DNA of 64,000 bases from assembly GCA_037447605.1 (NCBI GenBank), contig CM074814.1, positions 930,001-994,000 of the forward strand, written 5' to 3'. Source of the stretch: Zygnema circumcarinatum SAG 698-1b. Taxonomy: Eukaryota; Plantae; Zygnematophyceae. Below are positions 9,957 to 33,200 of this stretch, piece after piece. Under the pieces are notes generated by a model, which did not search any database, had not been told where the DNA came from, and saw only the letters and a program-made list of their open reading frames with translations. The first letter of the stretch is position 1. The number at the start of each line of letters is the position of its first letter. Made by a program: the position numbers and the translations under genes.

Positions 9957-10904
9957 TTATTGAGACATCAGTGGTTGAGGGAACTTGAAGCCGAGTGTGC
10001 TCTGTCTGCCCACCATGCACTGGGTCTCTTTTATGTTTTAATCTGACTGAACAAGGGTGACCTTGGTTAGTCCTCGTTTGCGAAACCTCTCACTTGGCTT
10101 CAGAAAATATATGAGGTGCCACTGGAGAACAGGAGGGCCGTGAGGGCAGTCGGCCAAGTGGCCAGAGGTTCTTTGGAACACGAGTTTCCGTTTTCCGTAG
10201 TTAAGCGTGTCCGTAGAACCTGCTCGTTGTTATTGCTTTGTTCGAAGGGACACTGGGAAGTAAACAAGAACAAAGCACAGTCGTGCATCATGTCCTTACT
10301 TCGTTTTTTGAAGCGGCTTGAAGAGCAGCACACTCGGTTTAACTGGCTTTAGACTTTGCGCTTCCTTAATTTCGGATTGTTGGCTCCAAGTCATTTCTTG
10401 GAATTGGAGTTAGGGAATGGTGAAGAGGAGGGGAACGTGCATTTTTTTTGTTTCTGATAGACCTCCACGAAACTTCAATCCTTCCCTTGAAGAAAGAAGC
10501 GTACTCCCCCGACCATTGTCGTTTTTTGCAATAACTGGTTCAGTATGGCAAGAAAGTGTGCGGATTACCTTCGTTTGGTCAGGAGAGTTTGCTTGATTAT
10601 TACCGTAGCCTCACTTCTGCCAGAATAACTAACCAGAACCACAAATTATGGGAGTAAGACTGCGAGGAACAACACATCTGCACGTGTGCACGTGCAGTTC
10701 GATAGCAGCACGATCGACAGTCATGAAGCGCACAGCAGCAGCTAGAAAGGGCGGTCTCGCACCGCGAACATGGGGGGGTTGGGGGGGGGGGGGGGAGGGA
10801 GGGGATGAGGGCCGTCCCAAGGGGAGGGAGACCGCGCCCTTCCTTTCCGTTCTCTGATTATTATTATGGCGGCGGACCTCTCTGGCACACCCACTTCTTT
10901 ACGC

Positions 10905-11110
<206 letters not shown>

Positions 11111-11305: not shown

Positions 11306-11773
11306 TTGTGGAGGTTAGAAAGAGGAGGACGTGCGAAGGGTGGAAGGAAGCACACGACGATGGGTCCATTGATGCAGCAAGAGGGTGACATTGAATATTC
11401 CTGGATGGTGGCTACTGCAGCTTCACATCATGTTTGCGTGGATGCATCGATGTTTGAAGACTTGACACCTTTGAGGGAGGTGGTGACGGTGAGGGTCTCT
11501 GGACTATGTCAAACTCAAGTTACAGCTTCAGGCACAGTCAAGGTCGAGCTTTTGGTTGGGAACAGAAGCGAGATAATTACATTGAGGGACGTGATGTATT
11601 CTCCAACGCTGAACCATAATGTGTTTTCGGTTCCTCTGTTCACACAAGGAGGATATATGGTAATGTTTGCAAAAGGAGTTGTGGTGATAGAAAGAAATTC
11701 GTGTCAGATTGGAGAGGGAGTAGAGAAGGAAGGTCTCTACTTTCTGCGTTCGAGGAAAGGAAAACCTGTTTGA
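11306..11773 (+). mobile_element. Ty1/Copia pol relic: aspartic protease/beta-barrel segment, degenerate
   Basis: WMVATAASHHVC...GTVKVEL...ITLRDVMYSPTLNHNVFSV...GYMVMF...GLYFL follows the Copia pattern WxxDSGAxxH...LxDVLYVPxLxxNLLSV...GLYxL. The catalytic Asp position reads Ala; stop at 11773; no integrase or RT follows. Confidence 0.8.
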
Positions 11774-12888: not shown

Positions 12889-13442
12889 ACGAGTTCCTCC
12901 CTCCTTTAGCCGGGTATCATTTTCCCTCTTTTAGCCCTACTTTTAGTTCTAAAAGTCCTAGTTTTAGAACTAAATAGAAAAAGAAAAGCTAAAAGGTTGC
13001 ACGTGCGGCTATCCTTGCACAGAACGTGACGGTGGTAGGCGCATTCCAATACCGTTGCGCGCACCAAATAGGATGACCTTTTGCGCCACGTGGCCGATTT
13101 TTTTTATAACTGCCACCGCGAACAAGCCCTAACGGCACACGTCAGCGAAGGTTCCACCAACTCGCCTCCGGGCGGAAAGATCCGTACGAGCAGGGCTTCC
13201 GGGCGGCGGATTTTGTCGTTTGGGAGAAACAATAGTTAATGTTGTATCGAGATATTGTAGACGTATCGGAAGCTACCGAAAAAGCGTACAGCAGCGCGGC
13301 ATCGCCGCTGACGGTGGTCGGTGGCTTCTGATTGGTGAACGGGTTGTTGAACTGACGTTTTACTGTGGCGCAAACCAACTGGAGACTCCTGAAAAAGGTC
13401 GCTCCAGTAATAGAGACACAACAAAAAAGTTTCAAAAAGCAT

Positions 13443-13873
13443 CACAGTTCGGACCAGTGGATCGGCAACCATTGGACAACCATTGGATGGCAATGGTTGG
13501 ACGTCTACTGGTTGCCAACCAGTGGCATCCACTGGTTCCAAACCAGTCGAATGGTTGTTTCGGTTCGCAACCACTGGCTGGCAACCAGTCGAATGGTTGC
13601 CTACCAGTGGATCCACTGGTTGGCAACCAGTCGACTGGTTTGGAACCAGTGGATGCCACTGGTTGGCAACCAGTCGAATGGTTGTTTCGATCCGGCGGCA
13701 CTGGTTGGCAACCATTCGAATGGTTGCCAACCAGTGGATCCACTGGTTGGCAACCAGTCGAATGGTTGCCAACCAGTGGCATCCACTGGTTCCAAACCAG
13801 TCGAATGGTTGTTTCGGTCCGCAACCACTGGTTGCCAACCAGTCGACTGGTTTGTCTAATGGTCCGATCTGTG
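13443..13873. mobile_element. hAT-type MITE (431 bp) with palindromic heptamer interior
   Basis: TIRs CACAGTTCGGACC / GGTCCGATCTGTG; perfect 8-bp TSD AAAAGCAT at 13435-13442 and 13874-13881. 8-bp TSDs are typical of hAT. Confidence 0.9.
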
Positions 13874-14892
13874 AAAAGCATTTACGGAAATGAAAGGTAC
13901 ACAAATTAGTACTCCGCTGTGTGGAAATTTTGATGTCACCAAAATATTTGTTTTGGCTTGAAACGTACGAGAGGACATACTGACGATTTTTAAGTCTGAC
14001 AACCCCAAATTGCAAACTCGGTTTTTCACAGTTTGTACGTCTGACGATCTGGTACGGAATGTTGGTGGGAATATTGAGACTTCGAAGCGACAAATAACTA
14101 ATTTGTCGTATATTTCCCAGTCAAAGCCGTTGAATCCGACCGTCAAATTAGCGGACAAATTAGGCTGGACATCTTACGGCTAAGATTAGGCCGGGCATCG
14201 TACGGCGGCCATGAGTTTGTCCCGTAGCGCCAAGGGAATCGGACTTTCAAATATTTGATGTGCCACGTGTGATCTCGGCGGTGAGTTCACCGACAATCAT
14301 GCCCGCGCGCCAATTGGTCGAGACTGCTCCCTGGCGACGAAATGTCGGTGCATTAACTCGCCCCCAAAGCCGCCATCGAACAGATCCCCGCAGTGCGATT
14401 CTCGGGCAGACAAAAATATTCAAAATAAAATTCAGTCCCCACCATACGGAGAATCTGCCCAAAACAAATCACGTTCTCCCTTTTGAGCCGTCAACGGCAC
14501 GAATAGAAAATTTTCATTGCAGGATCGGCAGGAATATCGAATCTATATAAAAACATTTCCTGCCCGTATGAAACATTTTTTCCTGCCAGAGCTGTATCCT
14601 TCCTGCCGCCATACGTGTCGTCGCCACTTGACTCCCACTCCGCGGCGGAGGCTGGGGGTGAGTGGGAGAGAAAGAGAAAGGGGGCGAGAGAGGTGGGAGA
14701 GGGAGAGAGAGGAGAGAGAGGGGGAGAGGAGCGGTAGAGAGAGGGATAGCAGAGAGAGAAATAGGGAGAGGAGAGGGAGAGAGAGAGGGAGAGCAGAGAG
14801 AGGGGGAGGAGTGGGAGAGAGAGTGGGAGGGACAGAGAAAGAAGAGGAGAGTGAGGGAGGGAGGGAGAGGAGAGGAAGGGGAGAGGGAGAGG

Positions 14893-17718
14893 GAGAGGGA
14901 GAGGGAGAGGGAGAGGAGAGGGAGAGAGGGAGAGGGAGGGAGAGAGGGAGGGAGGGCGAGGGAGGAAAGGGAGAGGAGAGGGGAGAGGAGGAAAGGTTAG
15001 AGAGTAGGGGACAGGAAGGAGGGAGGGAGAGGGCAAGAGACGAGAAAGGTAGGAGTGACTTCAGTGGAGCTGCGAGAGGAGAGTCCGGTGGTTTGGGGGA
15101 GAAGGCGGATATCTTCAGTGATCGGGGGCCTCTGAGAGTGTGGGAGAGCCTGCGAGCGAGAGGATTATGGTGGGAGAGTGTTAGAGAGGTGGTAGGTGGA
15201 AGGAGAGGCAGCCATGGGCGGGGAACACTGGGAAGCTGCTCGGGAGGAGGGGAGCCGGAATGGAGGGAGAGGCTTCATGTCGTGGAGAGGAGTGTTGCGG
15301 ACGATCATGCTGCTACTGGCCACGTCTCTCACAAGGGCGGGTGAGTAGGGGTGGAGGGAGGGAGGCTGTGAGGGAGGGAGGAGGAGGGAGGGAGGGAGGA
15401 GGGAGGGAGGGAGAGAGGGAGAGAGGGAGGGAGGAGGGAGGGAGGGAGGGTGGGTGGGAGGGACGGAGAGAGGGAGAGAGGAGGGAGGGGGGGTGGGAGG
15501 TAGGGAGGAGTTTGGAGAGCAGTGGGAGGGAAGTAGGGTCTCATCGTGGAATATACTGAGCACTCTGAAGAAAATATTTGGCTCTCTTTGCCGGCTTGCT
15601 CCTAAAGCTTGGCATTAGAACTTGATGAGCTCATTCATTTGTACGGAAGTGGTTGTGACACGGAAACGGTGGGAACCCAATGGGGCTCATGTGATTTCTA
15701 TATAAATAAAACCTTGAAACACAATAGCATGACATTTTCTAAAATTTTCAATCTTTACTGTTGACATTGCCTTCCTTTTTCTGAGAATTGTGTTTTTTTG
15801 TGAAGCTCAACGTTTATTAGATAAGTAGCAAATGTTGAGCCAAGTAAGTTAAAAAAAAAAAAAACAATCGTCAATATGGCCAATCAATCAGAGCCGTCCG
15901 AATACATATTATAATCAATGGCAATTCACTCCTTTCCATATCTTGTCACTGTCAAGTACTCTTTACTCACTCTGTACTCAATTTTAACAAGCACTGAAGG
16001 AAACCACATTTACCTTATACCCCTCACTCCGAGAATTGGACTCTGTTCCTGCATTACAATGTTTATATATGTTTTCAATTCAGACTTAAACATTCACCTC
16101 ATCGTTCATTCGCACACTTTAAAGAAGCCTTGATATTGTGTGGTTGCTTATTCTTTAATCCCCTCTTCTCCCGCCTTCCTCCTCCTGCCTCCTTCCTCCC
16201 TCCCCACTCCCCCACCCCCCCTCCCCCCCGTCTTTTCCCTCCTCTCCTCCCCCCTCTCTCCTCCCACCCGCCCCACTCCCCTCCCTCCTCCCTCCTCCCT
16301 NNNNNNNNNNGAGAGGGAGAGGGAGAGGGAGAGGGAGAGAGAGGGAGAGGGGAGGGAGAGAGAGGGAGGGAGGGCGAGGGAGGAAAGGGAGAGGAGAGGG
16401 GAGAGGAGGAAAGGTTAGAGAGTAGGGGACAGGAAGGAGGGAGGGAGAGGGCAAGAGACGAGAAAGGTAGGAGTGACTTCAGTGGAGCTGCGAGAGGAGA
16501 GTCCGGTGGTTTGGGGGAGAAGGCGGATATCTTCAGTGATCGGGGGCCTCTGAGAGTGTGGGAGAGCCTGCGAGCGAGAGGATTATGGTGGGAGAGTGTT
16601 AGAGAGGTGGTAGGTGGAAGGAGAGGCAGCCATGGGCGGGGAACACTGGGAAGCTGCTCGGGAGGAGGGGAGCCGGAATGGAGGGAGAGGCTTCATGTCG
16701 TGGAGAGGAGTGTTGCGGACGATCATGCTGCTACTGGCCACGTCTCTCACAAGGGCGGGTGAGTAGGGGTGGAGGGAGGGAGGCTGTGAGGGAGGGAGGA
16801 GGAGGGAGGGAGGGAGGAGGGAGGGAGGGAGAGAGGGAGAGAGGGAGGGAGGAGGGAGGGAGGGAGGGTGGGTGGGAGGGACGGAGAGAGGGAGAGAGGA
16901 GGGAGGGGGGGTGGGAGGTAGGGAGGAGTTTGGAGAGCAGTGGGAGGGAAGTAGGGTCTCATCGTGGAATATACTGAGCACTCTGAAGAAAATATTTGGC
17001 TCTCTTTGCCGGCTTGCTCCTAAAGCTTGGCATTAGAACTTGATGAGCTCATTCATTTGTACGGAAGTGGTTGTGACACGGAAACGGTGGGAACCCAATG
17101 GGGCTCATGTGATTTCTATATAAATAAAACCTTGAAACACAATAGCATGACATTTTCTAAAATTTTCAATCTTTACTGTTGACATTGCCTTCCTTTTTCT
17201 GAGAATTGTGTTTTTTTGTGAAGCTCAACGTTTATTAGATAAGTAGCAAATGTTGAGCCAAGTAAGTTAAAAAAAAAAAAAACAATCGTCAATATGGCCA
17301 ATCAATCAGAGCCGTCCGAATACATATTATAATCAATGGCAATTCACTCCTTTCCATATCTTGTCACTGTCAAGTACTCTTTACTCACTCTGTACTCAAT
17401 TTTAACAAGCACTGAAGGAAACCACATTTACCTTATACCCCTCACTCCGAGAATTGGACTCTGTTCCTGCATTACAATGTTTATATATGTTTTCAATTCA
17501 GACTTAAACATTCACCTCATCGTTCATTCGCACACTTTAAAGAAGCCTTGATATTGTGTGGTTGCTTATTCTTTAATCCCCTCTTCTCCCGCCTTCCTCC
17601 TCCTGCCTCCTTCCTCCCTCCCCACTCCCCCACCCCCCCTCCCCCCCGTCTTTTCCCTCCTCTCCTCCCCCCTCTCTCCTCCCACCCGCCCCACTCCCCT
17701 CCCTCCTCCCTCCTCCCT
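14893..17718 (+). repeat. Tandem duplication of a 1418-bp unit (about 14893-16300 and 16311-17718), each copy ending at a 10-N gap
   Basis: Identical ORFs at offset 1418 (15165/16583, 15260/16678, 15918/17336); both copies end ...CCTCCTCCCT then Ns. Confidence 0.95.
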
Positions 17719-20700
17719 NNNNNNNNNNCCCTCCCCCTCCCCCTCCCCCTCTCCTCCTCCCTCCTCTCGCCCCCCTCCCCTCCCTCCCTCCCCCTCTTTT
17801 CCCTCCTCCCTTCTCCCCACCGCCCCCCTCTTTTCCCTCCCTCCCCCTCCCTCCTCCCCCCCCCTCACCCCTCTTCCCGCCCCCCCCCTTTTCCCCCCTC
17901 TTCCCTCCCTCCCTGCAGATGTGAGCATATACTACTACCCCGGCATGCAGTTCCTCGGCAGCCGCCCCCTCCTCAACAGCAGCGCGCCGGCCTCCCCCGC
18001 GGAGTGCGGCGCGCTCTGCTCCCTCTACGCGCGCTGCTTCGCCTTCGTGCACTACCCGACCGCGTGCTCGCTCTTGGGGGCGGCAAGCGCGCCGAACTAC
18101 AACAACTCGCTCGCCACGGCGGGAGTAGTGGACCGAGGTGAGAGAGCTACAGGGGAAGGAGGAGAGGAAGAAAAATTGCTTAAGAAGTAAACACAGCTTG
18201 CTAATGTGCAAGCTTGTCCACAACTGCGCTTGACCTCTCTGTCACCTATCTCTCTCTCTCTCTCTCTTCTCTCCCCCAGGGACCAAATACTACACCTTTC
18301 CGAACACGAACTTCATTCTGCAAAACGTTCCGGACATGCGCATTCGCAGTGTGACATCTGTTGCGGAGTGCGCCTCCTACTGCCAAGCGGTGCCGGCCTG
18401 CACCGCCTTCATATTCACCACGAACGACTGGGGGTACAGGGGCTGCTGGCTCAAGTACTTCGGCTTTCCCGACCCGCCAAGGGACACAAATCCTCTGTGG
18501 ACAAGCGGTCAGGTTGTGCGAGGTACGGCCGAGAATGGCCTCCAAATAATGCCCCCTTAACATTTTCTGCAAGACGAGACTCTGCAGGTTGAGGAAGGAT
18601 TTCTGTTCCAAAATCGACAAGGTAGCTTCTATCTCTGTCAGAAAATGCTTCATTGTGATTGACTGGAAGTGAAAAGGAGTATTGCAGTTCCCACTTGGCC
18701 CGACGACATGGCAGCGCTGGAAGCTCTGCAGAACAGCCTCTACTTCTATAATCAAACAGGTGAGAGGAAAATGTGCCAGTCCCTCGCCCCCCTCCCAACC
18801 TCTCTCCCTCTCCCCTCCTCCCGTCTGCCTGTTCCTAACTCCTCTCCCTCTCTCTTTGCAGGACAGAAGACCTCGGGCATACCACAATGGACACAGTTTC
18901 AGGTGGACCCTTGCGCAAATTTGGCGAATTTTCCAGGAATCGTTTGCAACATCCAACAAACCATTAACGGAACCCAATACAGCCGAGTCTCAAGGTGGGG
19001 CTCCTTCGTACGAACACTTCCTCAAACTGGGGTGTTGTCTGAATATTAAAATTGCGCAAATTGACTTTTACAGGCTTACGAGTAACGGCTTTAGCCACAG
19101 GCTTGTATCAGCGTCTGCTAAGCTGATAGGGCTTTACTTGTTTTTCGTTGATTTACAGTATAGACTTCTCCGCAGACTACCCGGGCCAGATCTGGGGCTC
19201 CATGACTCCTGCTTTTCACCTGTCAGCCATCACCAGCTTCAAGCTCAATGTGAGATAGTGCTGAAGGATCAGGAAGCGACCTCTTCTCTCCTGCCCCTTC
19301 TCTTTCCTTCCGCAGCTCCCTCTCCTTCAGTGCAACCCATCTCCTGTCTCTCCCATAAATCAACTTGATGAGTACTCACTAATAGTTGTCAGTACACAAT
19401 GTCTGCAGGGCCTAAATGTGAACCCATTGGTGTCCTGGATTTTTTATAATATGCCGAACCTGTTGAGAGTGAATCTCAACTACACAGTGTTTGCAGGTCC
19501 TTTCCCGCAGTTTAGCGTTTATAATAAGCAGCTGGAGTATCTCAGCATCATAAATCAGGTGAGAGGGGTTTCAACAGATTGGAAGAAATTGGCGCCTGAA
19601 ACTGCTTCACATCTTGACGGAGAACTAATTTTAAGCTAAAAAGGAGATTGTAATAGAGCTCACGTGGCTGCATGCCCTTCCAAATCAAAGTTGATTCTCA
19701 GAACTTCCATGTTGGATAAAAACTGATTCTATGGCGATCCAATCCTGGGCAGGATAACAACCAAACGTTAGCGGGCAGTTTTCCTCCTTTCCTTGTGGAC
19801 CTCCCACTTCAGGTATGACAATGTTTCCTTGCGAGAAAGGACCTTCTGGAAGGTCATAGAAGCCAGAACAGCTCTTTCACTTTTCGATTCCATTCAACCA
19901 CTTCATTTCTAAACAAAACAAATGGGCTGACTTGGTTCAAAACTCTCTGTTGACATATGCCGTTTTGTAATTAGTACTTGGGATAAATTAATCGAACGAA
20001 GATTATTTTCATGCCCGAGTGCAGGTGCTGAAGTTCCGCGGAAACAAATTCTACGGTCCCCTTCCGAACGTCCCAAGGACCTCTCCGTGGCGAGCATATC
20101 TTACAACATTGGACCTTTCGTATAACATTTTTTCAGGTGTGTGAAGACCTCCGTGAACTCTCAGAAGTGCTGCACGAGAAGCTTCCTGCGCATTGCTTTT
20201 CTGTCTCTCCATCTCTCTTCCATCCCCCTTTCACTCTCCCTCTCGGCACATCCCAAACCGCTTCATCTCCAGCCCTCTCTCTCCTTCCCTCCGGACCCCC
20301 TCGTCCTTCGCCCACTTTTTCACTTCCTCTCCCCTCTCCCTCTTCCTCCCTCTCTCCCCCCCCCACTTCCCCATTCCTCCCTCTAACTCCCCCCCACTTC
20401 CCCATTCCTCCCTCTACCCCCCCCCCCCCCNNNNNNNNNNCCCCCCCCCCCCCCCCACTTCCCCATTCCTCCCTCTAACTCCCTCCCTCTCTCTCCAGGA
20501 GGAATTCCCGTGTCCATTCTACGCCTCCCCGTCCTCCAGAACCTTGACCTTAGCTTCAACCGTCTCAACGGCTCCATCTCCACTCCCGTCCCCGGCGCTC
20601 TCTCCGCTTTCATCCTCTCCCACAACTATCTGAGCGGGCCCCTCCCCTCCCTCAACCTCATTCCTGCCCCGATCATCCGCCTCCAATACAACCTCTTCAC

Positions 20701-23159
20701 GGGGCCTCCGCCTTCGCGTCTGTCCCCCACTCTGACCTACCTTTCCCTCGCCAACAACAGACTACAAGGGTCGTTTCCAGGTGAAAGAGAGCAGGGGCAG
20801 GTGGGTAGGTTAGGGTTGATATTAGGATGGGGTTGAAGATTAGAATAGGGGTAGTGTAAGGGTGGGGATTGAGTTAGGGTCAGCATTGGGGTGGGATTGG
20901 GTTGGGTTGAGATATGAGGTTGGGATTGGGATAGGGATTGGAGGCTTGGTGTTTGGGAGTAGAAATGAGTGTTGAGGTTGGGAGGACTTAGGGCCATTTG
21001 CTTACGAAGATGAGGTTAAAATAGGAGGAAGAGAGTAAGCAAGTGTGGGGTGGAAGCGGAAGAAGGAAGGAATGCAACGGTGGTGGGTATGTTTGGGTAA
21101 TGCATGTGCATGCATTTCGATTGGAATTGGATGGCGACTAAGACTGCAAAGAGAATGCTACTCCAACAGGGGATCACTTGAAGCATGCTAAGTCTGGTTT
21201 TCTTCGACTCGGCTGGGCTTGCAGATTTGAGCGCATACAGCTCCCTCACGGTGGTGGACTTTTCTAGCAATGGGATCTCAGGGAATTTCAGCCAGTCCTT
21301 CATCCCCCCCCTGACAACCCTCGTCTGTAAGCATTTTCTCCTACATCTACTCCATGATGCAGGCAATTAGTCATCCTGTCACTGTTTTTGCACAACCTAA
21401 GTACCCCTTTGCCCTTTTCCTTGTTCCAGAGTCTCATTTTTCTCACTTCTTGTGTATTTTAAGTTTTATAACCAGAAATCTTACGCTGTTCTCCTATGGT
21501 GTTCAGTGAGAAAGAACCTCCTATCCGGTCCCCTGCCTCCCGGGCCCCTCCCTCTCAGAAACATTGATCTGAGCTTCAACAAGTTCTCAGGCCCCATTCC
21601 AAGCTCCTTCTTCGGAGCACCTTGCATCTATCGCCCCTACAGATCCTTTTTTTGCGCTCCATGGGCGGGAAGAACCGGATACATGAATATATCACACAAC
21701 CAGGTGAGTCCTGCAAGCACGCAAGTGAAGGTTTGTGAAATTCCAGCGTTCCTGACATGCTGTTTAAATGGGAGGTAGTTCTCTTCTGTCATACAAAGAT
21801 GTTTGACTGCAGATATTCTAATTTTTCTCTGCATTTTCTTGATTTATGTTGATTTATCCAGTTATCGGGGCCCGTTCCCGGAGCAGCTGCATTTATAAAC
21901 ATGTCGGGCCCGGTGGATATTTCATACAACCGGCTTTCAGGGCTCATTCCGGAGGATGTCGGCACAATTCAAAGCAGCCTCTACCTCTCCAACAACTACC
22001 TGTCGGGCCCACTCCCTGGTAGCGTCTCTCTCCCCAGAGGGTCTTAAACCCTAGAATGCTTCCAATGCTCTGCTCTTCACCTCACCTCTGAACCGTTGTC
22101 TGATCCTTCTCACATGTCTTTCATGTTGAAGAGATGCAGAATTTTGGATTGCCATGTAGTGGTCCATCTTTCAGTTTATAATGTTTTTTCTAGCCAAGGC
22201 CAACGGATTTCAACCAGGTCTTTGTGAGGACTATCTCCATTCTGCTTTCAGTAGAACTCACACACCCTTCCCCTCTCCCTCTCTCTCTTTCTCCCCCCCC
22301 TTTCCTGCCAAACAGCTACCTTCTCTCAGTTCCTGGGACAGCAGCTCTATCTCGACGGCAACCGACTCAACGGCACAATTCCTCCCAACCTTCTTTCTAA
22401 CGTGAACAACGCCTTCTTGGACCTTTCAAGGAATTTTTTCAACGGGCACCCTGGTGAGAGATTGCGTTAAAACTGCCCACTTTATTTCGAAAAAGCTTTG
22501 GGCAACCAATTGAGGGAAATCCCTATTTCTATTCAGTTTCTTCTCGAATTTCTTAACTATTTAACCGTTTTGGCACGGGTACAGATTTCTTTGCGCAGTC
22601 AAACTACTTCGCATATGTGAATGTGAGCAACAACCTCCTCTCAGGCAACCTCCGCAATTCGCTTTTCACGCCCAACATCACCTCCCGCCCGCCTTTCACA
22701 GCGGATTACTCAAATAACCAGCTCTCTGGAACCCTAAGGAATTTGGCCGCGCAGGGGAATCTGCTCTTGCAGGTGAGAGCTCATTTACCTGTTTTAGCTG
22801 CTTTTGTAGAGAATTGCAGAAGAAGCTTAGATGAACGACTTTCGTCCACTCCTTCTCAATTACTCGGAATCGCATGGAAGCGAGGGGGGTTTGCAGAAGA
22901 AAGAAAGGAAGTGATGCTGAAAGTAGGTACTTTCTGTTATTGCTCCTATGTCTGCAGGGGAATTACTTTGGGGGTCCGGCACCCAATCGAAACGGTACTG
23001 CTGCTGCTTTCAAGCTCGATCTCTCTCGGAACTGCATTTCTTGGCCCCCTTGCTCGGGTACCTGCGTTTCAACCCCTGGGAGGGCGCCGGAGGAGTGCTC
23101 CCTGTTCTGCAACGCGCAGAGTCTGACGGGCGCCTGCAAGTGAGAGCCTCCCACTGTCC

Positions 23160-23191
<32 letters not shown>

Positions 23192-23803
23192 ATGGCATGG
23201 CATGGGAGATGATAGGTAGATGGGCCTTTTCTATGGAAGTCGGAATGGTTTGCGAGGAGGCTTGACTTTTCGCTGTCCCTACGGCTTCTGACAGGCTGTA
23301 CTCTCAGTCAAGTTGAACAGATGCATCTTGAAATGGAAGAACAGAGAGAGAGGGAGCGAGAGACTGGGAGAAGGGGGAATGGGAGAGGGACAGGGAAAGG
23401 GAGCGGAGAGGGAGAGGGGAGGGGGGGAGGGGCCTCTCTTTTGGTCTGTGGCTTAACCTCCTCCTCGCCCTCGATTGCTGCGCCTTGCTGCAGCGGCAAG
23501 GGCACGTGCTTCTTCAGCGGCGGCCCGGGCAGGAATAACGCGAGCGCCGCCGCGTGCTGGTGCTATGCGGGCTACGGCCCCGCCGCGGATGGGCGGGGCT
23601 GCCTCCCCCTCCGCCCCCCCCCTGCAGCCCCCCCCCGACGCCCTCCCCCTGCAGGCCCTCCCCCTGCAGGTCCCCCCCCTGCAGGTCCCCCCCCTGCAGG
23701 CCCTCCCCCTGCAGGTCCCCCCCCTGCAGGTCCCCCCCCCGCAGGCCCTCCCCCTGCAGGGCCGCCGCCGCTCACGCCTGTGCTGCCTCGCGGCCGGCTC
23801 TGA
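16695..23803 (+). CDS. Predicted secreted protein: signal peptide, 2 PAN/Apple-like domains, LRRNT, about 20 plant-type LRRs, Cys-rich/EGF-like domain, (GPPPA)8 tail
   Basis: Exons 16695-16758 (MSWRGVLRTIMLLLATSLTRA; duplicate at 15277-15340), 17919-18137, 18280-18522, 18688-18759, 18862-18994, 19159-19249, 19409-19558, 19753-19812, 20025-20136, 20501-20780, 21225-21326, 21507-21703, 21862-22018, 22316-22453, 22585-22772, 22958-23139, 23494-23803. All are GT-AG and phase-compatible. PAN-like ECGALCSLYARCFAF and ECASYCQAVPACTAF; LRRs such as LDLSFNRLNGSI; EGF-like CNGKGTC...CWCYAGY...GC. Confidence 0.85.
23640..23772 (+). repeat. 15-bp coding minisatellite (GGCCCTCCCCCTGCA variants) encoding (GPPPA)8
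   Basis: Read directly in the last exon of the LRR gene. Confidence 0.93.
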
Positions 23804-24479: not shown

Positions 24480-27255
24480 CGTTATAGTGATATTCTTTAT
24501 AATAACACCATGAATATACTGACGTTTTTTCCGGGAACGGAATTGCACCACTGCAGATCCTGCGCCAGTAGTGACGCCATTACGGATATAATGACATTTG
24601 AAAAGCCCTAATTGTTACTATATATTCAAAATCTCGATATTATCCACCCACGTATCGGAATATACGTTAGAAATAGGAAAATTCTATTCTCACACCTTTT
24701 TTGTCTACACACAGGCCTCTTTTCGCCGGGCAGATTTTAAAATAGCACAAAAAAAGAACACACCTTTCACACCTTCTCACCTTTTTTTTTTCACCTTTCT
24801 TTTCCCACCTTTTTGAAATCGATACACACCTTTCTCCATCGGGCAGATTTTACCCCTTCTTGTTTTTTTCAAAGAAAAAAATATCGGCCTGCCCGAATCC
24901 ACTCGGAGCAGAAGATCCGTCCGCCACGAGATCGTTCGCGGGTGGCCGTCCTTCACACGTGCAGAAACAATACACCGTCGATTCTAGAGAAGATCACACC
25001 ACGGCAGATCACCGTTCGATCGGCAGCCGGGCTCGGTTCCAGCGAATGGCACACGCCCACGTGTCCCACCCGAGCAGGCTCGAGGACCGTACACAACTCG
25101 TACGGTCGCAGCTTCGAGGAAAGTCTAAATTCCTTACATTGCGAGCTTGAACCAATCACCATCTGCCGCGTGCTCTTCTTAGACGTGGCAAACTGTGATT
25201 GGTACAGGCACTCAACTTTAATTATTACGTTTTTTGACTTTCCTCGAAGCTGCGGGCGTACGCCTTTTGTACGGTCCTTGGAGCCGGCTTGGGTGGGACT
25301 AGGGATGGCTTAATTACGACTATATAATCCTAAACATCCTTTTCTATAATCTATATTATATTATATAACTGTGACGACTAAATAACGGCTGTTATATAAT
25401 ACTTTACAACGCCTTTACAACACGTACGGTCGTACGGTCATACGACTGTACGGTATTATGCGGTGAAGACAGAGTGAACCAGACGGACGCATTTCGCAAC
25501 GCCAACGCCAAAACGACCTAATTTTGGTATGGTACGACCGTACGAACGTACGAGTACGGCCATACGGTCATTAATTGTTCAAAACGAGTGGGTATAATAT
25601 ATGTAATAAAGTGTTTTACTTTGTACTATATTACTACTTTTAAACCCGTTGTAAAGTATATAATATAGTCGGACTTTATAACGCGGGCCATCCCTAGAGT
25701 AGACTGTACGTGGCATCGCGTCAGGGGAACTTTGTAACTTACGCCCTGGACAAGCAAGGTGTACGGACAGATATGAATGGCGACACGCGAAAGCATCCAA
25801 AATGTCGGTGGTGGATTCGAGCGGGGGGCGGCTCCATGGGCGGCGCGGCAGTTGGACTTTCGGCGGTCAAACTTCCGCGACATCGACTTTGACCGCCGTC
25901 TCATATTGCGTTGTTGTCCGTGTGCTCACGCGAGCCCCAAATGTCGTCCTTGTCCGCGCTCCCTCCGCCCCCGCGAGCCGCCCGCCGCCATTTGTTTTGT
26001 CGCCACGCGCGTCACCACCTCGCGAGGAGGGTCCTACCGAGGCGCTCGCACGTGCGTGACGAGTATGGCGACACGGCGCGGCACGATTTTTCTCATCGGC
26101 GGAGGTGCCTCCAGAGGCACCTGAATTGGGCGTGCGAAATTGGGCCTTTTTTGGCCAATTTGGCATGCACGGAATGCCGTTTTCGTAAGCCCGGAAATCC
26201 CGGAACGGTAAGGTTCGGCGGAGCCGCGGATCCCGACCGAAATTCGTACACGGAAAAAGTGACTTTTCGTATACTGAATTCGGGAATTTCGTAGGAACGC
26301 AAAATGTTGTTAACCATTGAGAGCCTGGACCAATCACAAATTGCCATGTCATATAACACATGGCAGATTGTGATTGGCTGCCACACGAACCGCCGAAGGC
26401 TGGCTGGTCCAGCTCATAATTTCGCCTCGGTTCGTTCTGCGAGAGAATCGACGGTTGCGATTCATTGCATGTGTCAAGGACGGCCACCTGCGAACGATCT
26501 CGGGGTGGACGGATCTTCCGCTCCGAGCGCATTCGGGCAGGCCGATATTTTTTTCTCGCAAAAAGAAAATTCAGGGGAGCGAGATATTCAAAGTGGGGCG
26601 ATGGGGTATCGTTTTCCATGTTTTGCAAAAATAAAATCTGTCCGACGGAAATGGTGTGTATCGATGCCAAAAAGGAGTGAAAAAAGCATTTTCCGTTATT
26701 AATCCTTTTTGAAATCTGCCCGACCGGGAAGGAGTGTTTGGATCCAAAAAAGGGGTGGAAATAACACTATCCCACTTTTTCGCGTCTCGTTTCGTCACGT
26801 CACGGTCCCAAACATACTTGTCACGTCATGTATTGCCGCAACCAATCATGTCACTCCACGTGTTGCGCCCTCAATACTTTGCAGACGCGCGCGCTTCGTA
26901 TGATTCAAATCACCATCCGTACACCCGACGAGAAAAGGTCTGTATCTATTCTACAAAAGTATGAAACAGCATTTTTCGATAACAAATCCTTTGTAAAAGC
27001 TGCCCGGTGAAAAAGTGACTGTAAATACTTTCCTTGTCAATAGTGTGTACGGTCGGAATATATTTGTAGCGTATATTCCGATGCGTGGGTGGATTATATC
27101 GAGATTTTGAATATATAGTAACAACTAGGGCTTTTCAAATGTCATTATATCCATAATGGCGTCACAACTGGCGCAGGATCTGCAGTGGTGCAATTCCGTT
27201 CCCGGAAAAACGTTAGTATATCCACATTGTCATTATAAAACATTGTCACTATAAA
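24480..27255. mobile_element. Non-autonomous foldback/Mutator-like element with long imperfect inverted arms (about 24480-25215 and 26310-27255)
   Basis: Matching inverted blocks: 24510-24672 with 27061-27222 (GGGAACGGAATTGCACCACTGCAGATCCTGCGCCAG...), 24866-24960 with 26466-26560, and 25150-25215 with 26315-26385. No transposase ORF; exact termini and TSD not resolved. Confidence 0.75.
25300..25696. mobile_element. hAT-type MITE, copy 1, nested in the foldback spacer
   Basis: TIR TAGGGATGGC...GCCATCCCTA (Ac/Ds-like); CGTACGG-rich subterminal motifs; flanks GGTGGGAC / GAGTAGAC match poorly (eroded TSD). Confidence 0.85.
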
Positions 27256-30263: not shown

Positions 30264-33200
30264 TTCTCAGAAGACCGGCTCACATGCTTCAAGCAGGGGC
30301 ACTTGGAGAAGGTGCAGCGATAGTAATGTCTGCACAACAGGAAAAACACAACTTCAATGCACCAGCAGCTTAGAGGGGGAAGTGTATGCTCTGTGGCGGA
30401 TGCAGGTGAGAGTCCAGACCACCTTGCCAGCATGAACATGCCACCGTGGACCGGCCCCCCCGATCGCGCAACCTGGGCTGGGTAGGGAAGGAGGGCCGAG
30501 GAGGGGAGGGGAGGGGGAGGGGGAGGGGAAGGAGGAGGGGGAGGGGGAGGGGAGGGGGAGGGGGAGGGGGAGGGGGAGGGGGAGGGGGAGGGGGGAGGGG
30601 GGAGGGTGGGGGGAGGGGAGGGGGAAGGGGGAGGGGGAGGGGGGGTGGTGGGGAGGGGGAGGGGTGAGGGGGGATTGGGGGGGGGGAGGGGGGAGGGGAG
30701 GGGGAAGGGGGAAAGGAAGCAGGGAGGGGAGGGGAGGGGAAAGAAAGAAGGGAGGCGAGGGGAGGGGAAAGGACGAAGGGAGGGGGAGGGGAGGGGGAAT
30801 GGAGGGGGAGGAAATGGAGAGGAGAGAGGGAGGGAGGGGAAAGGGAGGGGGAAGGGACGGGGAGGGGAGGGGGAGGCGAGGGGAGTGGAGGGGAGGATTC
30901 CTGAGCGCATCACATATGTTGCAATCTGCAGATCTTTTCGAGATTTTCCTTTTCCTTGCAAGCTCTATCTGAGTCCTTTCTCGTCCCCTAAGCACCACAG
31001 CAAGTCTCAAACGAAACAGTTACGACTCTCTTTCAGAGACTCGCAGAAAAGACCATGAACCTGTATGCACACAGTCGTTTAAGGTCGTGTGCTGATCGGA
31101 TTCATATTTCTTTCATGAAAGGGATGCTTTTAATAGCAGCTCGGATCGCTTGACCCCAACATAATTGTGAGCTATATTCTATGCCCTCTTTCCTCAAAGG
31201 GTCTTCTTTTTTAAACCAGCCACACCCATTCGTCCTTCCTCCTTTCATCTGCTTCCTGATATCTCGCACCCACTTTCTCATTGCAAAGCTTGTTCTTTCA
31301 TATCTTACTCGATTTCGTCCGAGGGTCCCAATACTCTTTCTGCTACGGCCTTCCACTTTGTTTTCTCTTTCGTGTCCCACTCGTCTCCTGTTCAATCACA
31401 TCCGACCTCAAGCCGTCTCTTCCCCTATCGTCGCTAGTACCATTCGTCCGCTCGCCTTATGCCAAGGTCATTAGGCTAACGTTCTACACTGTCCATTTCT
31501 CCGTCCTTGTTCACACTTATATCGTTCTGTTCCCCCGTTTCCTCAGAAGGGCAGAAGGGAGGAATCTGTCTCCTCAACTTCAAACTCTCTAATCCCCAAC
31601 ATCGTTCTTGCCCTGTTTTCTCTCGTCTCACCTTCCTTACTGCGCTCTTATCCTCTCATTCGTCCCTTTCACAACTATAACTGCCTTCTGCTCCTCCTTT
31701 AAGCAAAGTAGCCCATGCTGCCTCACGTCCTGCAGCTCCTTACACCGCTGTCAGTGTCCGTTTGCCTTTTGATCTCCACCCCATTTTCTTCCTAGCGTTC
31801 TTGTTCACTGATCCTTTCCGCTTTCTTTCTGTTTCTCAGATTGACTTTCTCTTTCTATCCACCTTTCTTTGCCCCCCAATCCTGGATCTTGTATCTGTGC
31901 CTGGGTCTTATCTCATCTGCTCACTCTGATGTCGCTTTCCTTCTCCGGCTGTCCTCTTCATACAATGAACTCCTCTCCTCACTCTTCCTTCCCTCGATAA
32001 CTCTCCTCTGTTCTCCTCGCTGTGTCCTCCTTGCACTTTTCGCTGTTCCTCCCTTTTGAATACCATTTGCGTATGCACTCTCTCCATCCCTACTCTGCCA
32101 CAAGCCCATTACGTGGTCCAGCCCCTCTCTTTTCCTACTCCCTCCATCGTCTACCTTCCGTTCTCTCTCTGTTTCATCTTTCCTCGGCAGAGCTGACCCC
32201 CCACGCCTTTCCTGTTCAATTTAAGTCTCCCCTACAGCTGAGAGTTGAATTCCTTTCGGTCCCAACTCCTTGCCATATACACCCGAGATTGCCATACGTT
32301 ACCTCGAAAGGCCCATATTCTACCTCGCATAATCGTTGAAGTACCAACCCTAGCAATATCCCTTGAACTCGAAATCTTATGTTTAACCATGTATCCGCGA
32401 TGTATACGATGCAACTTATCTTTGTGCAACACTAATCGACACGATGGAGGTACTCTGAGAGGACCTAGAGTTGGATAGGGAAGAGCGACATACCTTGGAT
32501 ATGGGCTTCCTTTGACAGATTTCTGGCCGTATTTCCTCCAGCGGTACTCATCCATTGCTACCTCTTGCTCAGTTTCCGTGATCACAACTCTTTGTTGGGC
32601 TCTGGGTCCGCGGGCTTTGGGCCGCCTCCTACACTCGAATAACCAATACGATCTTATAAGGAGGGACAAATCGTTATGGAAAGATTCATACATTATGAAT
32701 ATTAACTTCACTAATTTGTTCAATGTTTGAACATAGTTACGTCCTGCCATTGCTAGTCCTACAATCCGACGAAAAAACTAAGATGAATCAGTTTGCTCGT
32801 AGTAGAATCGGTGGATCCGATGGATCCGATGAATCGGATGGATCAAATAGCATTGCCTGCATGCATGTGCTCATAGGTGAAACCTTTGAAGAACGTTAAG
32901 AAAGAGAGAAAACATACGTGTCACCCCTTCCTTCCAATCATATTTAGCTCGAACCCTCCCTTTGCCCTCTCCACATTATTTACCCTCCCACTGCCCTCCA
33001 TCTCCTCCTCCCACCCACTTCACCAACCTCGTCCTCTCCAGCTTCCCGCTTCGTCCTTACTAGCACACTGAGTTCTACCTTCTCTTTCTCTCATATAATG
33101 TTCACAAAGAAAGAAACCCACTAAAGAAACATCCATTTCCCAGTAGAAAAGAGGACGGGAGAGTCTACATTCCCTCATCCTCCCTCAAACCGTCATCTAC

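Follow-up and report, generated by a model that had tools for sequence, protein, structure and literature searches.

Plant cell-surface sensing was assembled in the algae closest to land plants. Among the surface proteins of land plants that contain leucine-rich repeats (LRRs), the LRR-extensins (LRX) are bound to the cell wall, where they bind RALF peptides, and they have about 10 LRRs along with Ser-Pro(3-5) repeats and Tyr cross-link motifs. The S-domain receptor kinases contain B-lectin, SLG and EGF domains, followed by a single PAN domain next to the membrane. CpRLP1 of Closterium is a protein of 589 amino acids with 10 LRRs and a transmembrane helix (PMC5736609), and a survey from 2026 describes PAN domains alongside LRRs in the ectodomains of receptor-like kinases (RLKs) from chlorophytes (PMC12757656). 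Here, we describe a gene in a stretch of 64,000 nucleotides from the streptophyte alga Zygnema circumcarinatum SAG 698-1b (assembly GCA_037447605.1, contig CM074814.1, positions 930,001 to 994,000), which was analysed as a whole and is hereafter called the window, with its first nucleotide as position 1. With somewhat more confidence than doubt, we consider it to be an intact nuclear gene that encodes a secreted mosaic protein of 899 amino acids without a membrane anchor. The predicted protein consists of a signal peptide, two PAN/Apple modules, an LRR N-terminal cap, 21 LRRs, a Cys-rich cap, an EGF-like module and a proline-rich tail, in that order.

The gene is located on the plus strand at positions 16695-23803, with the start codon ATG at 16695 and the stop codon TGA at 23801-23803. 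It was rebuilt independently from the raw sequence, and the result was identical to the 17-exon model proposed in an earlier note on this DNA, which is borne out by the splice sites and the reading frame: all 16 introns are of the GT-AG type with pyrimidine-rich acceptors, the phases of the exons close, and the coding sequence of 2700 nucleotides contains 899 codons and the stop. Retention of any one of 14 of the 16 introns would lead to a stop within 26 codons, and if intron 16 were kept, the protein would stop one codon on and lack the remaining part of the EGF module and the tail. Intron 4 (102 nucleotides) is the only intron whose retention would leave the remaining protein in frame, while intron 15 contains no stop but would shift the frame. 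The repeat register of the LRRs, as read from the translations, is unbroken over every exon junction of the LRR region, which lends the splice sites good support from within the model. Judged by these features, the locus has the look of a real, intact nuclear gene of a streptophyte alga.

Many of the introns end in long CT-rich tracts without stop codons, for example at positions 18138-18279, 18760-18861, 20137-20498 and 22019-22315. Open reading frames (ORFs) that run through them are meaningless and may be misread as Pro/Ser-rich coding sequence. One such stretch, located before exon 2, was considered as Pro-rich coding sequence and rejected; all three frames are open because the DNA there lacks A, and there is a strong acceptor downstream of it.

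The LRR region contains 21 plant-type LRRs plus a cap, as counted by reading the translations, and the tandem repeats are 23-25 residues long with a consensus that ends in N-x-L-s-G-x-I-P. The domain tests were made exon by exon with single-exon queries, and LRR_1 scored above the Pfam cut-off on exons 10, 12, 13 and 14. The N-terminal cap showed a weak match to LRRNT_2 (13.4 bits, E-value 0.1) and was otherwise recognized by eye. A search against the PDB with exon 10 yielded 75 sequences at E-values up to 0.01, and nearly all of the 60 that were listed are plant LRR ectodomains. The best match in this search was GSO1 (5.5e-27), followed by HAESA, MIK2, FLS2 and BRI1, while the match to LRX2 (1.8e-10) was far below those to the receptor kinases. 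By sequence similarity, the LRRs are thus of the plant receptor type and are closest to the ectodomains of LRR receptor kinases rather than to LRX. Between LRR 13 and LRR 14, the coil contains a loop-out of 22 residues with two Cys, a small island for which no family match was obtained.

The second of the two PAN modules, PAN2, is encoded by exon 3 and scored above the Pfam cut-offs for both PAN_4 (31.7 bits versus a cut-off of 27) and PAN_1 (25.3 versus 21.4). In the PDB, it matched the apple domains of MIC4 from Toxoplasma gondii (3.4e-6), and in the ESM Atlas, exon 3 matched PAN clusters with a score of 0.96. An exhaustive HMMER search with PAN2 against 1.84 billion protein representatives gave 76 matches, and PAN proteins accounted for 13 of the 14 matches that were scanned with Pfam. 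The proteins matched by exon 3 come from oomycetes, apicomplexans, annelids and dinoflagellates and are of a generic type with several PAN domains. Their identity to exon 3 is no more than 35%, and neither plant-type LRR motifs nor EGF motifs were found in them.

The first module, PAN1, is encoded by exon 2. When aligned with PAN2 over 77 residues, it is 30% identical, and the positions of all four Cys coincide. When a profile was made from the matches to PAN2 only, PAN1 came first against 2917 decoys, with 13.9 bits versus 10.1 bits for the best shuffle. The AlphaFold (AF2) model of PAN1 has a mean predicted local distance difference test score (pLDDT) of 66, and 78-87 in the core. A Foldseek search with this model placed apple/PAN structures in the top six positions, with weak E-values of 0.08-0.7. 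In a VIA fold search, which was made without Foldseek, SML-2 came first (Z 4.9, root-mean-square deviation 2.3 over 46 residues), followed by the apple domain of kallikrein, MIC4 and the N domain of HGF, the top four spanning Z 3.3-4.9. From its sequence and model, PAN1 was accepted as a divergent PAN/Apple module, albeit one below the Pfam threshold.

The EGF-like module contains six Cys, of which the first two are encoded by the end of exon 16. Exon 17 contains the PROSITE patterns EGF_1 and EGF_2, with C-x-C-x2-G-Y-x(4,8)-C near the end, and it weakly matched the solved EGF domains of LRP4 (1e-3) and factor X (about 0.1). It is this signature, together with the weak matches in the structural database, that suggests an EGF-like identity for the module. 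The tail that follows consists of about 65 residues with eight PPPAG units encoded by a 15-nucleotide tandem repeat, in which there are seven exact GPPPA codon units. Three sites vary among the units, all at codon position 3 and all synonymous, and variation confined to third codon positions fits with coding in the current frame. After the EGF module, the tail contains neither Ser nor Tyr, and no Ser-Pro(n), which means that it is not an extensin. The C-terminus is basic and non-repetitive, and it is not hydrophobic as the end of a GPI signal would be. The highest mean over 19 residues on the Kyte-Doolittle scale in any exon is 1.24, and no window has the strength of a membrane span. There are 15 sequons for N-glycosylation in the protein, and the number of Cys is even (22). 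These results agree with the earlier note, which had described about 20 plant-type LRRs, a Pro-rich tail and the lack of a transmembrane helix, a GPI signal and a kinase; no kinase was found within about 8 kb downstream of the gene on the plus strand.

The gene has probably arisen by exon shuffling, since the exon for the signal peptide ends in phase 1, and a single phase 1-1 exon encodes each PAN module. Exons of phase 1-1 that each encode a module are the classic layout for the shuffling of extracellular modules. The gene may show, exon by exon, how the assembly of surface sensing could have occurred, with phase 1-1 modules placed between a signal-peptide exon and an LRR body. It has been proposed earlier that the receptor genes of early streptophytes underwent gene shuffling (Sasaki et al. 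2007, as cited in PMC10868138). The phase 1-1 layout of the PAN exons means that such heads can be slotted in before the LRR-EGF body.

The content of modules points to an extracellular binder rather than a transducer. In the proteins that matched best, the apple/PAN domains are lectins that bind galactose or modules that bind proteins. The protein would be released into the wall or the mucilage, where the PAN pair may bind a glycan or a protein in the manner of apple-domain lectins, and a peptide or protein ligand may be bound by the LRR coil. The EGF module and the stiff polyproline tail would serve as a spacer, with the tail possibly making weak contact with the wall, and any signalling would need a separate partner in the membrane. 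Provided that it is produced, the protein would be a binder of the LRR type, either soluble or held by the wall, whose head resembles a lectin, and a candidate for the capture of wall-integrity, mucilage or mating signals. A more specific suggestion, which is speculative and to which we assign little probability, is that this PAN-LRR-EGF protein, being free-standing, acts as an extracellular co-receptor invented independently in the zygnematophytes, in which the PAN modules would dock on a glycan of the wall or mucilage and the LRRs would capture a secreted peptide or pheromone and present it to a membrane kinase. If true, this co-receptor would be a functional parallel to LRX-RALF-FERONIA made from different parts. 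Knock-outs by CRISPR are workable in Closterium (PMC5736609).

No close relative or orthologue was found in the exon-wise searches, and there is no paralogue of the gene within the 64-kb window. A metagenome scan with exon 10 identified nine generic LRR loci with 28-40% identity, none of which had PAN or EGF exons nearby. In the ESM Atlas, exons 3 and 10 matched only generic PAN and generic LRR clusters, respectively, and no combined architecture was recovered. No description of an unanchored protein with the order PAN-PAN-LRR-EGF and a proline tail was found in the literature or among the database matches to single exons, which agrees with the earlier statement that no described protein with this order of domains was known. 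As predicted from the sequence, the layout appears unusual.

The assembly around the 5' end of the gene contains a direct duplicate of 1385 nucleotides, with 100% identity between positions 14916-16300 and 16334-17718 at an offset of 1418 nucleotides. Each copy stops at a gap of 10 Ns (16301-16310 and 17719-17728, respectively), and for this reason the duplicated block is probably an artefact of gap filling or scaffolding. The block includes exon 1, which is therefore present in two exact copies, and either copy gives the same protein, with exon 1 ending in phase 1 and exon 2 beginning in phase 1. Exon 1 encodes an N-terminus with a basic n-region, a hydrophobic core of 10 residues and T-R-A before the junction. 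The two assembly gaps inside the gene are both intronic and placed in CT-rich DNA of low complexity, and the coding sequence is thus untouched by either. The junction between exons 9 and 10, which surrounds the gap in intron 9, rebuilds a regular LRR, and neither frame nor continuity is affected.

A number of observations weigh against an intact gene for a secreted protein of this layout. PAN1 is under the Pfam cut-off (PAN_1, 15.6 bits versus 21.4, E-value 0.015), and exon 17 on its own, which holds only part of a module that is split by intron 16, gave no Pfam EGF match. Of the two PAN modules and the EGF-like module called in the earlier note, PAN2 stands by the Pfam cut-offs, whereas PAN1 is backed by its similarity to PAN2, the custom profile and the fold searches, and the EGF-like module by its six-Cys EGF_1/EGF_2 signature. 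The signal peptide was assigned by eye, there is an upstream in-frame ATG at 16632 that would add 21 charged residues, and the join between exons 1 and 2 crosses both a gap and the duplicated block, where the assembled length of intron 1 is unreliable. At the other end, the tail is encoded by a short tandem repeat, a type of sequence that assemblies collapse, and its number of repeats is uncertain. No transcript or annotated protein was found for the gene, and its own product was absent among the 1.84 billion cluster representatives searched with exon 3. Word searches with exon 10 and exon 17 (residues 1-45) were also blank, although this says little because the candidates were limited to proteins of exon-like length. 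All statements on function are inferred.

A rival reading, which we regard as unlikely, is that the gene model is incomplete at one end. The protein would then either have another N-terminus or continue after the proline stretch into further modules, such as a longer rod, a transmembrane helix with a kinase, or a papain-EGF-LysM arrangement, and the short tail and the stop would be due to a repeat that has collapsed or a splice that was missed. Consistent with this, the 15-nucleotide tandem repeat of the tail holds several AG/GT and CTGCAG/G sites, exon 1 lies inside the artefactual duplicate, and the searches with exons 3, 10 and 17 gave no cDNA support. However, there is no gap in the tail, the C-terminus is basic and non-repetitive and is followed by a clean stop, and the introns other than intron 1 are at most 444 nucleotides long. 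The sequence downstream of the gene also argues against such an extension: on the plus strand, none of the ten longest open segments up to 29.4 kb matches a Pfam family, there is no kinase motif from 23.8 to 32 kb, and a six-frame motif scan showed no hydrophobic run on this strand downstream of the gene and no papain or LysM motif in the whole window.

The absence of the product from the 1.84 billion cluster representatives and the lack of an identified orthologue would also be expected of a silent or decaying duplicate, which was recently shuffled and has kept an open frame while not being expressed. This we judge to be distinctly improbable, since all 17 exons are free of stops and frameshifts, every splice site is canonical, the Cys patterns and the LRR consensus are conserved, and the variation in the tail is solely synonymous; the absence from databases is weak evidence, as expression could be specific to a stage. 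It is very improbable that the product is a type II protein held in the membrane, for which translation would start at the ATG at 16632 and the hydrophobic stretch would become a signal anchor that is not cleaved. While this ATG lies in frame 21 codons upstream and would provide a charged N-terminal extension, the hydrophobic core of only about 10 residues is too short to span a membrane, and it is followed by T-R-A, a motif of small residues of the cleavage type. Our preferred interpretation is still that of an intact gene for a secreted protein without an anchor, and the features on which it is based are listed in Table 1.

Table 1. Positions in the window of the exons and protein modules of the gene, the assembly gaps within it and the second copy of exon 1.
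Feature	Position	Strand	Description
Second exact copy of exon 1	15277..15340	+	Within the block 14916-16300
Exon 1	16695..16758	+	Start codon and signal-peptide-like N-terminus, 21 amino acids, ends in phase 1
Assembly gap	17719-17728		In intron 1; flanks CT-rich, low complexity
Exon 2	17919..18137	+	Phase 1-1; whole PAN1, 4 Cys
Exon 3	18280..18522	+	Phase 1-1; whole PAN2, 4 Cys
Exons 4 and 5	18688-18759, 18862-18994	+	LRR N-terminal cap with Cys pair
Exons 6 to 16 (first part)	19159..23032	+	21 plant-type LRRs
Assembly gap	20431-20440		In intron 9; poly-C / CT-rich
Two-Cys loop-out, 22 residues	21614..21679	+	Exon 12 translation, between LRR 13 and LRR 14
Cys-rich cap after the last LRR, 4 Cys	23033..23107	+	Exon 16 translation, by reading
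EGF-like module, six Cys	23108..23602 (coding 23108-23139 and 23494-23602)	+	Split by intron 16
Pro-rich tail, basic C-terminus and TGA	23603..23803	+	15-nucleotide tandem repeat

Upstream of the gene, the window contains only sequences of low complexity, an element that resembles a miniature inverted-repeat transposable element (MITE) and a retroelement-like ORF. The low-complexity DNA includes a long 6-nucleotide microsatellite at positions 10742-11098, which translates to (HA)n, (GM)n or (AW)n according to the frame and the strand that are chosen. The retroelement-like ORF is located on the plus strand at 11306-11773 and resembles, by eye, the gag/pre-integrase region of a Copia-type retroelement. 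The MITE-like element at 13220-14093 is palindromic, with overlapping ORFs on both strands and repeated short peptide motifs. Just downstream of the gene, two ORFs on opposite strands, at 24813-25313 on the plus strand and 25867-26670 on the minus strand, encode the near-identical peptide KKYRPAR..SE.KIRPPRDRS.VAVL and match no Pfam family, which suggests that they are an inverted pair of copies of a repeat element. Further downstream, an ORF on the minus strand at 32232-32750 contains a WRKYGQK motif and probably represents one exon of a gene for a WRKY transcription factor.

Of the described systems, LRX resembles the protein studied here in that it is secreted, as is also predicted here, in that an LRR domain, a Cys-rich region and a proline-rich C-terminus follow in this order, and in that it has neither a transmembrane helix nor a kinase. 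However, the predicted protein has 21 LRRs where LRX has about 10, it contains two PAN modules and an EGF module, and its tail is made of about 65 residues of PPPAG without Ser-Pro(n) or Tyr. Membership in the LRX family was ruled out by the composition of the tail, the number of LRRs and the weak similarity to LRX2. The resemblance to LRX that had been pointed out earlier is thus a loose one, as also seen from the difference between the matches to GSO1 (5.5e-27) and LRX2 (1.8e-10). What stands of the earlier interpretation is the order of the domains and the lack of an anchor and a kinase, while the analogy to LRX is weakened and the PAN-LRR pairing is already known in chlorophytes (PMC12757656) and so not new in itself. 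The roles put forward in the earlier note, a wall-tethered ligand or pheromone co-receptor or a decoy, are guesses.

The ectodomains of LRR-RLKs and receptor-like proteins (RLPs), such as GSO1, HAESA, MIK2, FLS2 and BRI1, share with the predicted protein the plant LRR of 24 residues, the N-terminal cap, the many N-glycosylation sites and a small loop-out. The protein described here differs from them in that it contains no transmembrane helix, cytoplasmic tail or kinase, and in that a PAN-PAN head and an EGF module have been added. Assignment to the LRR-RLPs or LRR-RLKs was ruled out by the lack of a transmembrane helix in any exon and of a kinase motif on the plus strand to 32 kb, and CpRLP1 of Closterium was rejected as a match, having 10 LRRs and a transmembrane helix and neither PAN nor EGF modules. 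No match to B_lectin or S_locus_glycop was obtained for any exon with Pfam, and the PAN modules are placed at the N-terminal end, which rules out an S-domain (G-type lectin) receptor kinase. The apicomplexan apple/PAN lectins SML-2 and MIC4 share the PAN fold and are the best matches of both PAN exons, but they lack LRRs, as do the S-domain kinases. The chlorophyte RLKs resemble the Zygnema protein in that PAN and LRR domains occur together in surface proteins of green algae (PMC12757656). Compared by description only, these are transmembrane kinases, whereas the protein predicted here lacks the transmembrane helix and the kinase and instead has an EGF module and a proline tail added to the combination of PAN and LRR.

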